A stretch of DNA of 63,514 nt, the filler included, from Pelomyxa schiedti (lineage: Eukaryota > Protista > Evosea): NCBI GenBank assembly GCA_020536535.1. It is 15 parts of 15 records of this genome, joined end to end, with 100 filler letters (N's around TTAATTAATTAA, not from the genome) between each part and the next. Parts side by side here need not be neighbours in the genome. Positions count along the whole stretch, not along the records: positions 1 to 6,133 come from JAHLWZ010001452.1; 14 more parts are not named here. One strand, 5' to 3'. Shown here one piece after another: positions 1-6,133 of the stretch. Position numbers and translations under genes: made by a program. Numbering within the stretch: the first letter of the stretch is position 1; each line of letters starts with the position of its first letter. Under the pieces are notes generated by a model, which saw only the letters and a list, made by a program, of their open reading frames with translations, did not search any database and was not told the origin of the DNA.

Positions 1-1786
1 GAGGGAGCCAATAGTGGCACATTGCCTTCACTGTGGGATGGGAGGTGTGTTGTGGGGTGGGGACACGTATGCGGTGAGCTGGGAACCACGGGCATGTTAA
101 GGAAAAAGGTGGTAGAGCATCTGAAAACCTCCTTCTCCCCTCTTCAGTTCATGTTTAAGGGTCTTGGCATTGATGCTGTGAAGTGGCTGTTGTCTGTACT
201 ACAAATCAGGAGGGAGGACATACCTTGGGCTTTGTATCTACCAGTGCTGAACGATTTGAATGGTGGCTTGATGGAGCCCTTCGAGTGGATCTTTGATGAG
301 TTCAACCTTGGAAAGCGGTTACCTGATTTCGCCCTTCGGGAAATGGTTAATTGGTGTGCATTTGGCCACTCACCAAGTAATATCAAGTGGTGCATTGATA
401 AATTCCTAAGAGTGCCAGTGGATCTATCAGAACTTCTGTTTGGGATGGTGGCTAATAACCACGCTACCGTTGAAGCTTTCCAACAGGTGGAAGCTTATAT
501 CACTGGAGATGCGGTTTCAATACACCTTCTGCCAATAGCCACAAACGAAGATACTGTAAAGTGGGTGCTATCGAAGTTGCAACAAGCTCCAAATGAGGGG
601 ATACTGAACTCTGTCTGCCAGCACATTGGGGATGTGTCATTTGTTGAGTGGCTTATCACAGAGAGGCATTTTACTCCCACTCTAGCAACGTTTGCCTCAG
701 CGTGCTCCACACCAAAGAGAAATGGTGCATCTCTTGCCAAGTGGCTTTCAACCAGGCTCACTATTACACTACCTGTTGTAATCAATTCTCTGAAGAAAGC
801 CCTCATTTATAACAACACTGATGTTGCTGATTGGCTGGAAGCAACATTCCATGTGATGGATGCTGTAAACTCCAGCACCGTGGAAGACGCTGGAAGCGTG
901 CTTGTTGACATCTGTCAGGAATACGGCGACTTTGAGGATAAATGTCTGGGCCTGAGGTGGTTCCTTCAGCATATCTCACAGCCTGCAAACATCAGTGACA
1001 CCGCAATCCATCGTGCAATTGAAGAGGAACTTCTCCACCACCGTGGAGAGGCACCAATGGTGTTGTTGAGCCACTTCCCTGCATTCGACCCTCAGAGAGA
1101 CCCAAATCTATTTGCTGGTATCTTCACCAGTGTCATGGGACGCATGAAGCTGAGGGAGCAGTTCCTTACCACCTTTGGTTCCTCACCACTTCTGACTCCT
1201 GAGTTTGTGGCAAATTGCTTGACCCCAAAGAACTTGGCTGCGCTATCAAGCAAAACAGTAAAGTGGGCCATTTCCAGATTCAATCTTCAGTACAGCCACA
1301 TCAAGCTCAACAACAATTCCCTCCTACTCAAGCTTCTATGCATAAGAAAGAACAGGTGTGTTCAGTGGCTCCTTGACTCCTTTGACATCCCTCTAAATGA
1401 TGTGTGTCTTTATCCCAACCAACCAAAACCATCTCACCTCAACACAGATTTTTGAGATGACAAAGGCCCTGCTGAATCCCACAATGGAACAAGTAGGCCA
1501 ATATGTTCAAATAGAACTGTCTGGGTGGAGAATTCTGCTCAACAAGTATCCCACAATCGACAGGGCGGCAATTATCGAGCACCTGATGCCGATGGTGGTA
1601 CAGTCGCCCCACACAGCAGAATTCACGATTCGCGAGTACGGAATCACACCGGAACAGGTGCGTCAGTGGCTGGAGGCCAACCAAAATGACCAAGATGGTG
1701 GCTTTGGGTTGCTGGCGGCTGGTTGTCATCCCAACACTGACATGAAGATTTGGATTTCTTTGCTTGGTCCCAACAGCACCCCCTGA
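1..1786 (+). CDS. Hypothetical helical-repeat protein of an expanded family (5'-partial; intron 1402-1447)
   Basis: The 477-aa ORF joins ORF 1397..1786 in frame through a 46-nt GT-AG intron (ND|IFEM). Its C-terminal motif SKTVKW.I..F.L...HI...NN..L.KLL recurs at 13143-13427. Confidence 0.7.
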
Positions 1787-2107
1787 TTGTTCAACAACAA
1801 AATCATTTTCTTTCTTGTTTCCAAGCATAGCACCTGGCAGAAACTCTTGTTTTTTTGGGAGATCCATTGCAGAGAAACAATCTGACATCGAGGTGCCTCA
1901 GGTGGCCTAAAAGGAATGGCCACGTGTCTCAGTTGTTTTTAAATGCCAGATTTACCCTTTCGCCTAAAACGGTACGTATCTGTGCGAGGAGATTCGATGG
2001 TCGTTTCGGCTTTCAAGGCGGTGGTGAGGTTCATTGTATCGTCAACCGTTGTAGTTTGTGGTGTGCCTCCCACCCAACCCCCATAACAAACTAACACACA
2101 CACAACA

Positions 2108-2995
2108 GTGGTGCTCGCAGTGTGCTACGTCGAGCTGTGGCTCTGCTGCCTCGCCCACGAGTACGGCCACGCGGCGGCCGACCTCGCCCTGTTCGGGGCC
2201 CCTCCCCAGGTCCACGTGGGCTGCCTCCCCGACGACTGCGAGTGCCTCCTGGGGCGCCCCTCGCTGCTGCCCGCCCCGCTGCGCTGGGCCACCCGCGGCT
2301 CCCTCGTCGTCCACAGGGCCCTCCCCGGCGTCGCATTTTCCGGGGGCCTGGGGGCCTGCGACCCCGCCGGCGGGGGCGGCGCCCCGTGCCGCACCCAGAA
2401 GTGGGTGTATCAGGCGCCCATGGGGGCCCTGGATGCTTTGGTGTATCTCGCTGGGCCTGTGGCCGGCGCCCTGCAGTGGTGCTGCTTCACTGCCTGCTTC
2501 TGGTTCTTTGTGGCCAGGCGTGTGGCGCCTCACTCTGGGCCTTGGTCGGTGGCTGCGAGAGGCCTGGTATCGCCGTTCCGGGTGATACAGAGCATGGCCA
2601 GAGACCCTCTTTCTCGGTTCCCCTGCCCAGACACTGTGTTCTGTGGGGCGTTGTCATGTGCCTCAGCTGTGAGCCTGGCACTGTTTCTGAACCGGGCAAT
2701 GTATGGTCTTTTCCCGGGCAGCCAGGAACTCCTGAACAACATGGAGTTTGGGGACTGCATCCTTCTCAGCGGCTCCATGAGTTCTTTGTGCCTTGGAGAT
2801 GGAATTGAGATTTGGAGAAGGTTCTTTGGCGCCAGCCGTAATGCAATGTGGCTCATGTGGGTGGCTACTTACTTAGCAGATTGGGTCATACGCATTGTGC
2901 TCGCTCGGAAAGTCATCCAGGTTGTGTGGAGCACTGCAAGAACGCAAAGAACCTCTTTGTTTGAGAATGTGTTAATACTTTCAAAAGTTGAGTGA
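2108..2995 (+). CDS. Peptidase M50 (site-2 protease clan)-like membrane zinc metalloprotease; first exon uncertain
   Basis: HEYGH zinc motif in a hydrophobic segment, downstream YLAGPVAG (M50 AGP motif), and a late GDGIEIW as the candidate third ligand. Several hydrophobic segments. Confidence 0.6.
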   Translation: MVLAVCYVELWLCCLAHEYGHAAADLALFGAPPQVHVGCLPDDCECLLGRPSLLPAPLRWATRGSLVVHRALPGVAFSGGLGACDPAGGGGAPCRTQKWVYQAPMGALDALVYLAGPVAGALQWCCFTACFWFFVARRVAPHSGPWSVAARGLVSPFRVIQSMARDPLSRFPCPDTVFCGALSCASAVSLALFLNRAMYGLFPGSQELLNNMEFGDCILLSGSMSSLCLGDGIEIWRRFFGASRNAMWLMWVATYLADWVIRIVLARKVIQVVWSTARTQRTSLFENVLILSKVE

Positions 2996-3130
2996 TAGAC
3001 TAATTAAGAACTAATGTGCAAATACAAGCTCTTTTCTGTACTCTTTTATTTCGTACGAGAGCTGTGGCCGCATCACTCGTTATTTTGTTTTTTCCTCGGT
3101 GATCACTGTTCTCATAATACTGACTGGGTG

Positions 3131-6100
3131 ATGCAGACCCTCAAGATTGTTGCTGTAGGTGATGGAGCCGTGGGAAAAGTGTGTAGGTATATAACGAGCC
3201 CGTCCCACAATTAACATTGCCCCGGTTTTCTTTTCAAGACGTGCATGCTCGTACGATACGCCAGGGGTTCATTTCCAAGCAAATATGTGCCAACTGTACG
3301 CTTGCATTTATTTATTTACTTTTTCCCTCCTGTTGTTTTGTTCTGACCAGTGACACAACAAAAAGGTGTTTGAGAATTACACGTAATTACCAAAAAGACT
3401 CTGCTTTAACTTATTGAAATTGTATTAAGTGTGAATGTCATGCTCGAGGACAAGCCGTACAACTTGGACTTGTGGGACACTGCCGGTAATAACAAACTCC
3501 TTTTTTTTTTGTTTTTCTCAACTTGTTTGTCTGCCATTTGTTTGTGGGTGCTTGATTGGTTGGTTTTGTCATGAGTTGTTCTTTGTTGACTGAAATGCCA
3601 TCAGGTGAGGAGGAGTATGACAGACTGAGACCTCTAAGCTATCCCGACACAAGTATTTTCGCGGTATGACTTGAATATAATGTTTTCATTTTGTCATCAC
3701 AAACTCACAAGGTGTGCTTTTCAGTGTTCTCTCCTATCTCTTTGGAGAATGTTCGAAACAAGGTACAAAATATCTCTTGGTTTTTTTTCTTGTTACTCAC
3801 TGGGAATATGAAACAGTGGGCTCCTGAGGTGAGTTGTATCTCTCAGTTGACCCACCCCATTGTGAACCCTGATTATTGTTATTGTTTGGTTAGATTTCGC
3901 ATTTTTGTCCTGAAACCCCATTCATCCTTGTGGGAACAAAACGTGATCTGAGGACCGACCCTGTTGCCCTCAAGCGTATGATCGATTATGAGTACAATGT
4001 GGCTCCTGTTTCTTTTGAACAGGCCTCTGAGGTAAACCTGATTTCTTAAGACAAATCATCATTCAGTTGACTTGTTCATCTTCAGATGGCACGGGAGATT
4101 CATGCGTCAGCATACATTGAGATCAGTTCATTGTCTGGAGAGCACGTTCAAGATCTTTTCACACACGCAATCAGAATCGCCACAACGGGATCAACTGGAA
4201 TGCCACCCTTGAGAAGAAAGCAATCCGTTTCATCTTTTTCATGGGTAGCACTCATCCTTCTGAGATAAATTCATTCTCAGAAAAAAAGGGAACTCTGTGG
4301 AACGCAGTTGTTCCTCGCATTGGAACATCGAGGCCTTCTTCCACTGTTCCTCGGCCCTCATGGTCACCACTTTTCATTAATGTTGATGTAGCTGCAAGGT
4401 AATCTCTCATTATTTAATTCAGGGAGAGTGTCTCACGAAACTACACAGGTACGGTCACACGCAATCACGATGCGGAAGCGTTCTGTTCACTGTCGGTGGA
4501 ATATGTGCCGAGGGTGCACCGCCCGCACCCGAGGTACTGAGATTCGAATATTCGAGCGGAAGTTGGTTGCAACCAATCCCTCTTGGGGTCACAGCTTGCA
4601 ACGAGAACCCGCGGCACTCTGTTGTTTACAAAGGAATGACTTTCGCTGCTTCCGCGTATGTCTCTTGGGATAACTTCCCCCGCTCACAAAAAAAAGGTTC
4701 GTTGACAACCTGATGTTCCTCTTTGGAGGTTTTTATGCCATTCATTTTATCTTCACTGATTGGGTTCACACCACACAGGGAGAAGCAACAGTTACACAAA
4801 CTCGTTGCATTGCCTGAATGTGACCACAGGTGAGTGGTCACTTCTCCCAGAAGGAAATCCCTCAGCATCACCATCTCCTCGATATGGTTCATCAATGATT
4901 GCATTCGCGAGGCGATTATTTGTTTTTGGCGGGTATCTCGAGCATTCATTTTCCAACCTGTGCTCAAATTGATGCAGATATGACTGCAACGCGATTGAAG
5001 GTGAGGATGTTACTTGTTATGACTTGACTGCACAAAGTTGGATTCCGGTGTGTGTTATCTCACATTGTTGAGCACTTTACCATAACTTATGTTCCTATGA
5101 GATAGAAATAATTACGCTCTCTTTTCACTCGACGCACACAGGTGGCAATCAAACCGGGAGGACAAGCACCAAGCGGGAGATTCCATCACACCGCTGTTCG
5201 CCACAACGGAACCATGATTATCTTTGGTGAACCTCTCAAACTCACCCACAAGAACTCACCGGGTTACCCCACACAGGTGGAACAATGAACGGGAAGAGGC
5301 TCAACGATGTGTGGATTTTTGGTGAACAATTATATTAATCCTGATTGTAACATGACAACACACCCAGATATTTCCTCAAAGGTGTGGTTAAAACCAGCGA
5401 CGCAAGGGATCGCACCACCACCGATGCGAGGCCACGCAGCCGCTGTGATTGGTGATGAAATGTTTGTGTGCTCTTGTGATCCCCCTACAAGTTCTTCTTC
5501 AATGGCTTTGTTCAAGTATTTCTCTCTTCTTTCTCAAACAAATTGACACGCTAACATTCAAATTACGCACAGACTCACATTGGGATCAACAACCTTCGAG
5601 TGGTCACGAGTTGAAATTGGGAACACACCACCGGTTCGTGAATTCCACACTCTTCTTTCATCAGATACCGGTTCGTTGATCCTGGCAGGTGGTCGTGCTC
5701 TCACACCATCAGGTTCTTTCTTTCACAATCAATTCATTGACAACAATTGAACGGCCAATACTCCCAAACAAAGGAAAGATGCACGGCGATGCGTGGTGGA
5801 TTCAGCTTTTCAGCAACGTTTTCGGGATGCTTCCGCACGAACTGTGGATGAACATTTTCTCGTACTGTGATCCAAAGGATCTCTTCAGGCTTTCCGCTGT
5901 ATGTGTAAACCATAATGAACATGACATTCGCACTGACACACCATGCACACACAGGTTTGCCGGGATTTCCGGGCACTTGCATCAACAGACGGACTGTGGA
6001 CGCGGTTCATTCCGACGAGCATCATCAGTTCGTCATCAAACAAGGGTGCTCCCCTCAAGTCCCTGTTCAGGTCATCTGCTGCGTTTTACATTTATGCCAG

Positions 6101-6133
6101 TGGAACAAACCTCGCTGGTGATTGGTATGTGTG
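3131..6133 (+). CDS. Rho/Rac-family GTPase - six Kelch repeats - F-box fusion protein (multi-exon, 3'-truncated at contig end)
   Basis: Spliced motifs GDGAVGKT, YVPTVFENY, LWDTAGEEEYDRLRPLSYP and LVGTKRDLR. Then in-frame GT-AG introns (4245-4288, 4382-4422) lead into Kelch blades RYGHT..VGG, LFGG, RYGSS..VFGG, RFHHT..IFGG, MRGHA and REFHT..LAG, followed by the F-box LPHELWMNIFSYCDPKDLFRLSAVCRDFRALASTDGLW. Confidence 0.8.

Follow-up and report, generated by a model that had tools for sequence, protein, structure and literature searches.

The gene described here lies on contig JAHLWZ010001452.1 of Pelomyxa schiedti (Archamoebae, Amoebozoa; assembly GCA_020536535.1), a free-living anaerobic amoeba. 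This contig, whole and 6133 nucleotides (nt) long, fills positions 1-6133 of the window, i.e. the 63,514-nt stretch of DNA that was analysed. The gene is real and expressed, and fuses a Rac-like GTPase without the catalytic Gln to a six-blade Kelch propeller and a C-terminal F-box. Its parts, with amino acids (aa) counted from the first codon, are arranged as follows.

3131..6124, plus strand: whole gene as far as the contig reaches, from our own GT-AG model, its agreement with the NCBI protein and RNA joints.
3131..4181, plus strand: Rac-like G domain, aa 1-178, nine exons, from motif alignment to canonical Rac, sequence identity, and the Pfam and structure results for a paralog.
3607..3609, plus strand: Glu61 codon GAG at the site of the catalytic Gln, read directly in the switch II motif DTAGEEEY.
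4182..4357, plus strand: linker, ~44 aa, split by the intron 4245-4288, from AlphaFold2 disorder and the RNA junction between 4244 and 4289.
4358..5808, plus strand: six-blade Kelch beta-propeller, aa 223-541, from Pfam on the NCBI protein, AlphaFold2 and structure matches.
4399..4448, plus strand: intron 10 (50 nt, GT..AG), from RNA contig X1 record 3, which joins 4396/4398 to 4447/4449, and from the NCBI protein.
5818..6017, plus strand: F-box, aa 545-592, LPHELWMNIFSY..VCRDFRALASTDGLW, split by the intron 5899-5954, from Pfam, phmmer and RNA.
6018..6124, plus strand: C-terminal tail, ~40 aa, cut by the contig end, placed by paralogs that end ..GDWIFVP and disordered in AlphaFold2.

The gene model was built by a search for GT and AG sites around hand-placed exons and was then refined with RNA evidence. 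It consists of 20 exons and reads 627 codons, free of stops, from the ATG at 3131 to base 6124, with introns that are all GT-AG and measure 41-119 nt.

Exons 1-5, plus strand: 3131-3178, 3239-3295, 3366-3382, 3430-3485, 3605-3663.
Exons 6-10, plus strand: 3712-3762, 3817-3828, 3894-4031, 4086-4244, 4289-4398.
Exons 11-15, plus strand: 4449-4655, 4697-4728, 4779-4932, 4978-5047, 5142-5226.
Exons 16-20, plus strand: 5277-5321, 5368-5515, 5573-5712, 5774-5898, 5955-6124.

Two micro-exons of 17 nt (3366-3382) and 12 nt (3817-3828) fall in the G domain, and both are present as "letters between" in the RNA contigs. At the 3' end, a donor GT at 6125 immediately follows the last exon, so that about five codons and the stop lie past the contig end (6133). 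One RNA contig runs on beyond this donor with a matching next exon (GATTG/GATTTTTGTTCC); because of that exon, and because full-length paralogs end five residues later, we take the protein to be essentially complete, at ~632 aa.

Transcript support comes from three single-cell RNA runs of one study with spliced contigs. At least 10-11 exon junctions, among the joints listed, are supported by spliced RNA; on the plus strand, with the last base of one exon and the first base of the next, the spliced contigs show the following joints.

3485/3605 (within switch II), 3663/3712, 4244/4289 (Rho to Kelch), 4398/4449 and 4655/4697, plus strand.
4728/4779, 5047/5142, 5226/5277, 5515/5573 and 5898/5955, plus strand.

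The last of these, internal to the F-box, is present in three RNA runs. Among the matches listed, no RNA joint was found for 3178/3239, 4031/4086, 4932/4978 or 5321/5368, and exon 1 is without RNA cover in the runs examined. A sequence-only reading of this DNA had traced a canonical splice path from the Rho domain through Kelch into the F-box and named two of its junctions. The path stands, being stop-free and GT-AG throughout, and so does the intron 4245-4288, whose junction 4244/4289 is present in a 305-nt spliced RNA contig spanning 4158-4562. The second intron, placed at 4382-4422, has to be rejected, as an RNA contig and the NCBI model both show an intron at 4399-4448; the frame is the same either way. 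Across the corresponding join of exons 10 and 11 our translation reads ..FINVDVAAR/YGHTQSR.., and NCBI protein KAH3731453.1 (P0095) there reads ..FINVDVAARYGHT... Termination at the TAA of 4266-4268 was seen in none of the RNA contigs.

The transcript data also carry sequence variation. The contig across 4244/4289 matches 4158-4204 and 4288-4562 perfectly, and 33 variant letters replace 4205-4244, in frame, two codons shorter and paralog-like, from which we conclude that it derives from an allele or a near-identical paralog. Near 3277, a loose RNA contig end, ATCAACGCAGAGTACATGGG, is a template-switch oligo tail; since it sits just before 3277, the cDNA has its 5' end inside exon 2, which could reflect a truncated cDNA or an internal start. 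In the likely genomic source run (X4), a contig compared with 3744-4936 shows 18 substitutions and 2 indels over 1.2 kb, and a 5-nt insertion at 3500 is present as well. These differences reflect variation between alleles or between nuclei, or else a very recent duplicate.

The G domain retains a complete set of G1-G5 motifs (P-loop GDGAVGKT, switch I YVPTVFENY with T35, DTAG, TKRD and SSL) as well as the Rho insert (aa 121-137), and is 51-54% identical to animal Rac. Paralog P0093, a member of the same 90% cluster as the locus protein and the one for which the AlphaFold2 model was used throughout, matches Pfam Ras with 155.8 bits; its modelled G domain superposes on Rac1/Rac3 with a template modelling (TM) score of 0.96 and a root-mean-square deviation of 1.1-1.3, and is 62% identical to Rac1. 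Judged by the features of the Rho family, the nucleotide-binding motifs and the insert are present and Gln61 and the CAAX box are missing, and because Glu replaces Gln61 the gene counts as an atypical Rho. The substitution, already noticed in the sequence-only reading, is real: Glu61 is encoded at 3607-3609, and the switch II motif DTAGEEEY, split by the intron 3486-3604, is joined in RNA across 3485/3605. The lack of a CAAX box was likewise read correctly, as the G domain runs into the linker and Kelch and full-length paralogs end ..GDWIFVP, the protein's own C-terminus lying past the contig end.

Position 61 is unusual across the family. In the alignment, nearly all non-archamoebal members carry Pro and those of Archamoebae carry Glu, Asp, Gly or Asn, with Gln in the canonical Rac controls; three family members with Gln or Met are exceptions. 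In HRAS, hydrolysis falls about 8-fold with either Q61E or Q61P, and cells are still not transformed by Q61P (PMC6813200). The description "constitutively active", which had been considered for the Q61E domain, is therefore an unsafe label.

Behind the G domain, the linker forms a Pro- and basic-rich remnant (..PPLRRKQS..) at the place of the classical Rho hypervariable tail and CAAX box, and the equivalent residues 180-218 of P0093 have AlphaFold2 predicted local distance difference test (pLDDT) values below 50. The propeller that follows is matched on P0095 most strongly by the Pfam model Kelch_KLHDC2_KLHL20_DRC7 (298.7 bits), with further matches above the cut-offs to Beta-prop_ATRN-LZTR1 (116 bits) and Kelch_1/3/4/6. 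The count of six blades made from sequence is upheld by the motifs and by the P0093 model, in which ~24 strands cover 221-541 with pLDDT near 90. Among solved structures, KLHDC10 (9d8p_A) and KLHDC3 (9d1i_A) match the propeller best, with TM 0.73-0.75.

A C-terminal F-box had been predicted, in the reverse of the usual order, and its profile match was checked here: on P0095, F-box-like PF12937 scores 53.9 bits (cut-off 24.3) and F-box PF00646 43.7 bits (cut-off 20.5), both above the Pfam cut-offs. Pfam domain matches on full-length paralogs clear the curated thresholds as well. An exon-level Pfam search also matched the F-box, and single-exon queries gave weak matches for the Rho and Kelch pieces. 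Among solved F-boxes, phmmer returned FBXW7 (5ibk_B, E 2.5e-5), then FBXW8, SKP2, FBXL5 and KDM2B, and the F-box aligns directly with the Skp1-bound F-boxes of these five proteins. It stands C-terminal to the propeller in the locus gene and in all ~20 relatives scanned. A BTB domain has no Pfam match on P0095 or P0093 at E up to 1e-4; within the family it is confined to the Arcella-type relatives (P0031 and P0034).

Public annotation holds only part of this protein. The NCBI entry for the locus, KAH3731453.1 (484 aa, "Kelch-type beta propeller protein, partial"), which we reached together with the relatives by a HMMER search with exon 11, is identical to our translation from exon 9 on. It starts at Met147 (4086) and drops exons 1-8 (3131-4085), i.e. 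146 residues of the G domain, and because these exons are omitted the protein is named only as a Kelch protein. The same has happened to paralogs. Directly upstream of the N-truncated models P0024, P0022 and P0023, on two other contigs, lie unannotated P-loop exons (..VGDGAVGK, then GT), recognised from the sequence upstream of these models.

L002, ~3677: unannotated P-loop exon.
L001, ~13368 and ~16661: unannotated P-loop exons.

As these exons sit upstream of the truncated models, the N-truncations come from annotation, and loss or decay of the P-loop in P0024, P0022 and P0023 was rejected as mostly an annotation artefact; true degeneration is possible for P0003, P0001, P0008 and P0027. Because the 12-nt and 17-nt exons escape gene finders in these genomes, the GTPase half is cut short in public models, too few members of the family are counted, and this half is systematically under-annotated.

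At least 15 P. schiedti loci have the Rho-Kelch-F-box architecture, with head-to-tail paralog triplets on JAHLWZ010000712.1 and JAHLWZ010000135.1; these loci and the relatives in other genera bear out the earlier suggestion, made from a second copy, that the architecture forms a family. Identity to the nearest paralogs is 74-77% in the G domain, 90-91% in the propeller and 94-98% in the F-box. Pairwise ratios of nonsynonymous to synonymous substitution rates (dN/dS) against six paralog genes are 0.21-0.38, 0.12-0.30 and 0-0.24, respectively. Purifying selection acts on all three domains, of which the G domain is the one that diversifies. We note that the synonymous rate (dS) against the closest paralogs, the L002 genes, drops from 5' to 3' (Rho 0.42-0.64, Kelch about 0.33, F-box 0.09-0.13), which could be due to gene conversion of the 3' part among tandem copies. 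One P. schiedti model, P0001 (KAH37.., 826 aa), repeats a block of ~190 residues of Kelch blades almost exactly, likely a mis-assembly or a mis-predicted gene. A side branch, P0117 and P0123 of P. schiedti and P0033 of Pelomyxa sp. JSP, has the order Rho-Kelch-F-box-Vint, with a Hint-like Vint domain after the F-box, and in one of the three Gln61 is retained.

Outside Pelomyxa, the three domains are found in more than one order. In the Pfam scan, Rho-Kelch-F-box was found in Mastigella eilhardi (also with Glu61), Physarum polycephalum and one EukProt transcript, and Kelch-F-box-Rho, usually CAAX-ended (boxes include CLVM, CLLQ, CFVQ and CYLQ), in Balamuthia, Stenamoeba, Naegleria fowleri, N. 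lovaniensis and several metagenomic eukaryotes. Proteins of Willaertia and Acrasis run from Kelch to Rho with a CAAX ending; for Willaertia KAL9653727.1 and Acrasis A0AAW2Z8U0 the Pfam scan gave Ras and Kelch and no F-box match. Arcella intermedia (A0A6B2KXY3; P0031) and related metagenomic proteins have the order Rho-Kelch-BTB-CAAX. In P0031, P0034 and P0114 the G domain is N-terminal and yet the protein ends in a CAAX box (CSIQ, CIVQ and CVLQ), an arrangement suggestive of an insertion of Kelch-BTB that separated the G domain from its lipid tail. For the fusion, transcript open reading frames (ORFs) are complete in Mastigella and Arcella and truncated at the N-terminus in Physarum. Entries with Ras, Kelch and F-box by Pfam and without Gln61 include the following.

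P. schiedti KAH3766537.1 (633 aa, full length) and KAH3766708.1.
Mastigella eilhardi EP01105_P020558, Physarum EP00026_P006344 and Stenamoeba EP01102_P022805.
Balamuthia KAL6059648.1, Naegleria fowleri A0A6A5CFS0 and N. lovaniensis A0AA88GTK2.

Many of these uncharacterised proteins are Kelch-F-box-Rho-CAAX with Pro61, whereas the archamoebal group, including the locus, is Rho-Kelch-F-box with Glu61 and no CAAX box. Other amoebozoan and metagenomic proteins fuse Rho to further ubiquitin parts, namely BTB and U-box (including a Mastigamoeba-style "m51a1" gene), RING, and ubiquitin itself in Physarum (P0113, P0129, P0148, P0163, P0165, P0174 and P0202), and Rho fusions to the ubiquitin machinery seem common in amoebae.

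Several known systems share parts of this design. The RhoBTB proteins (RhoBTB1-3; Dictyostelium RacA) likewise begin with an atypical Rho domain, followed by a linker and a cullin adaptor, and are not regulated as classical switches (PMC4931677); RhoBTB3 keeps a terminal CAAX box, like the Arcella-type Rho-Kelch-BTB relatives (PMC4931677). In RhoBTB the G domain binds the first BTB and blocks Cul3 binding until a ligand opens the molecule (PMC4931677). RhoBTB differs in its two BTB domains and BACK domain, its binding of Cul3 and its lack of a propeller, where the locus has a six-blade Kelch and an F-box and no BTB, and the G domain of the locus is much closer to canonical Rac than that of RhoBTB (compare the 62% identity of the paralog to Rac1). 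The sequence-only reading's comparison with RhoBTB, as an atypical Rho with a cullin adaptor, was nonetheless apt, and is strengthened by the relatives that carry BTB for F-box (Arcella A0A6B2KXY3).

For the propeller, the best structural matches and the best Pfam model are of the KLHDC2/KLHDC3/KLHDC10 type, the C-degron receptors of the cullin-2 RING ligases (CRL2). In these proteins the propeller comes first and the cullin-adaptor element lies at the C-terminal end, as in the locus protein. They differ in that a BC-box/Cul2-box binds Elongin B/C, in lacking F-box and GTPase, and in an identity of only 20-22%. The F-box-Kelch proteins (plant FBK, ZTL/FKF1, animal FBXO42) combine both domain types in substrate receptors of SCF (Skp1-Cullin1-Rbx1) ligases; they have no GTPase and their F-box precedes the propeller, whereas it follows the propeller in the locus protein and every relative examined. 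LZTR1 (Kelch-BTB-BTB) combines a propeller covered by the Beta-prop_ATRN-LZTR1 model with a cullin adaptor, and its function is linked to small GTPases; in its case the GTPase is a separate substrate rather than a fused domain, and the adaptor is BTB/Cul3.

Based on its domain content and these comparisons, we consider it fairly probable that the gene product is an SCF substrate receptor carrying its own atypical Rac-like GTPase. The C-terminal F-box would dock on Skp1, and the KLHDC2/3/10-type propeller immediately before it would hold the substrate. As G1-G5 are intact, the N-terminal G domain would still bind guanine nucleotide, and owing to Q61E it would hydrolyse it slowly and probably escape RhoGAPs. 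Free of a lipid anchor and connected through a disordered linker of about 40 residues, the G domain would supply the input, either by setting, in a nucleotide-dependent manner, the recruitment of partners or the cellular location, or by an intramolecular contact that gates the receptor, a mechanism proposed for RhoBTB. Since Kelch-F-box is nearly constant and the G domain variable, the paralogs may differ in what the G domain reads. A link to cullins is supported by the sister proteins (Arcella P0031; P0034 and P0114), which carry BTB, a Cul3 adaptor, at the position of the F-box, and by the three domains staying together despite their differing order; that the propeller's best solved matches, KLHDC10 and KLHDC3, are cullin-RING receptors likewise favours a receptor.

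Some points weigh against this proposal. Some F-box proteins act with Skp1 outside SCF complexes, and what Glu61 or Pro61 does to the nucleotide cycle of a Rho protein is predicted here by analogy with HRAS (PMC6813200). In the P0093 model the F-box helices 552-583 reach a pLDDT of only about 58 and the predicted TM score (pTM) is 0.56, and hence no inter-domain contact is confidently predicted. As for a common origin of the family, the Rho-domain tree is poorly settled, with 39/68 inner branches open, so that a single origin is allowed rather than demonstrated: in the approximately unbiased (AU) test, one clade of all 29 Kelch-linked Rho domains was not rejected (p-AU 0.77), and the tree constrained to a single clade beat a quick free tree. 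In the Kelch tree, left without a root because one outgroup alone passed the length filter, the architecture types cluster (5 changes vs 15.3 when shuffled) and Rho-Kelch-BTB forms one starred clade.

Three other explanations were weighed against an SCF receptor. That the gene is an artefact or pseudogene, either neighbouring Rho and Kelch-F-box genes merged by over-permissive splicing or a decaying copy, could be argued from the NCBI model, which is without exons 1-8 and bears a Kelch name only, and from exon 1, which has no RNA cover while a template-switch primer marks a cDNA end at 3277. That same NCBI model, however, itself begins within the Rho domain, at Met147, and reads on into Kelch, and the RNA contig 4158-4562 crosses the Rho-to-Kelch junction. 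All 20 exons are stop-free, with dN/dS of 0.21-0.38 in the Rho domain, unannotated P-loop exons lie upstream of other truncated models, and fusion transcripts are complete in Mastigella and Arcella and N-truncated in Physarum. This explanation is contradicted by the evidence and we regard it as very improbable.

A partner of Skp1 that is not a ubiquitin ligase (E3), forming a cullin-independent complex in which Rho and Kelch serve membrane or cytoskeleton traffic instead of degradation, has a precedent in yeast Rcy1, an F-box protein with a CAAX box and a Skp1-dependent, Cul1-free role in endosome recycling. Most Kelch-F-box-Rho relatives are CAAX-ended and would accordingly be membrane-anchored F-box proteins. 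The locus protein and its archamoebal kin have no such box, however, and the propeller is closest to the genuine cullin-RING receptors KLHDC10 and KLHDC3; the BTB that the sister proteins have at the place of the F-box is a second, unrelated cullin adaptor, which makes little sense unless cullins are involved. A role outside degradation appears unlikely. A self-targeting GTPase, in which the Kelch-F-box half chiefly sets, in cis or between copies, how stable its own G domain is, to give a short-lived Rho signal instead of a receptor for foreign substrates, from an older receptor-substrate pair frozen by the fusion, strikes us as unlikely to a similar degree. LZTR1 is a Kelch-BTB adaptor that targets RAS-family GTPases, and the propeller also fits the Pfam Attractin/LZTR1 model, with 116 bits on P0095. 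The G domain occurs on either side of Kelch-F-box, as expected if only proximity is needed, and RhoBTB proteins are substrates of their own Cul3 complexes (PMC4931677). Against this, AlphaFold2 does not confidently dock the G domain onto the propeller (pTM 0.56, with the linker disordered). Conservation among paralogs is far higher in the propeller than in the G domain, whereas a receptor and ligand that co-evolve should show the opposite.

With the SCF receptor as the preferred reading of the locus, a broader and more tentative proposal, which we hold possible but short of probable, concerns the relatives. They may form an old subfamily of atypical Rho GTPases, with Pro or Glu at position 61, fused to a KLHDC-like propeller and a cullin adaptor (F-box or BTB) and common to Amoebozoa and Heterolobosea, whose members would be cullin-RING receptors that read the GTP state and couple Rho signalling directly to protein degradation in amoeboid cells. 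To our knowledge, RhoBTB is so far the only recognised Rho GTPase built into a cullin-RING ligase. The locus would belong to a second, larger group, in which a near-canonical Rac domain is predicted to be wired to a receptor propeller and to Skp1/Cul1 (Cul3 in the sister proteins), and which is spread over many amoeboid protists, Naegleria fowleri and Balamuthia among them. That Gln61 has given way to Pro or Glu almost throughout points to a shared, non-classical nucleotide cycle and, if the proposed function is true, these proteins would provide a natural system for how the state of a GTPase gates ubiquitylation. The earlier statement that the architecture had not been described holds in part. 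No paper describing a Rho-Kelch-F-box fusion or the Pro/Glu61 signature was found in the full-text literature, closed-access papers not being covered, but the same Pfam trio is already catalogued by automatic annotation in NCBI, UniProt and EukProt, in at least 10 genera and under generic names such as "rac gtpase", "rho family protein" and "F-box domain-containing protein".

Upstream of the gene, the ORFs 22-1455, 1457-1786 and 2108-2995 gave no significant Pfam match. At 2001-2800 the GC content rises to 60-70%, against 44-50% elsewhere, and this rise falls within the ORF 2108-2995 (plus strand, 295 aa), which ends just 135 nt before the start codon of the Rho domain. The ORF 22-1455 (plus strand, 477 aa) overlaps an ORF at 1397-1786; a single gene containing an intron probably accounts for both.

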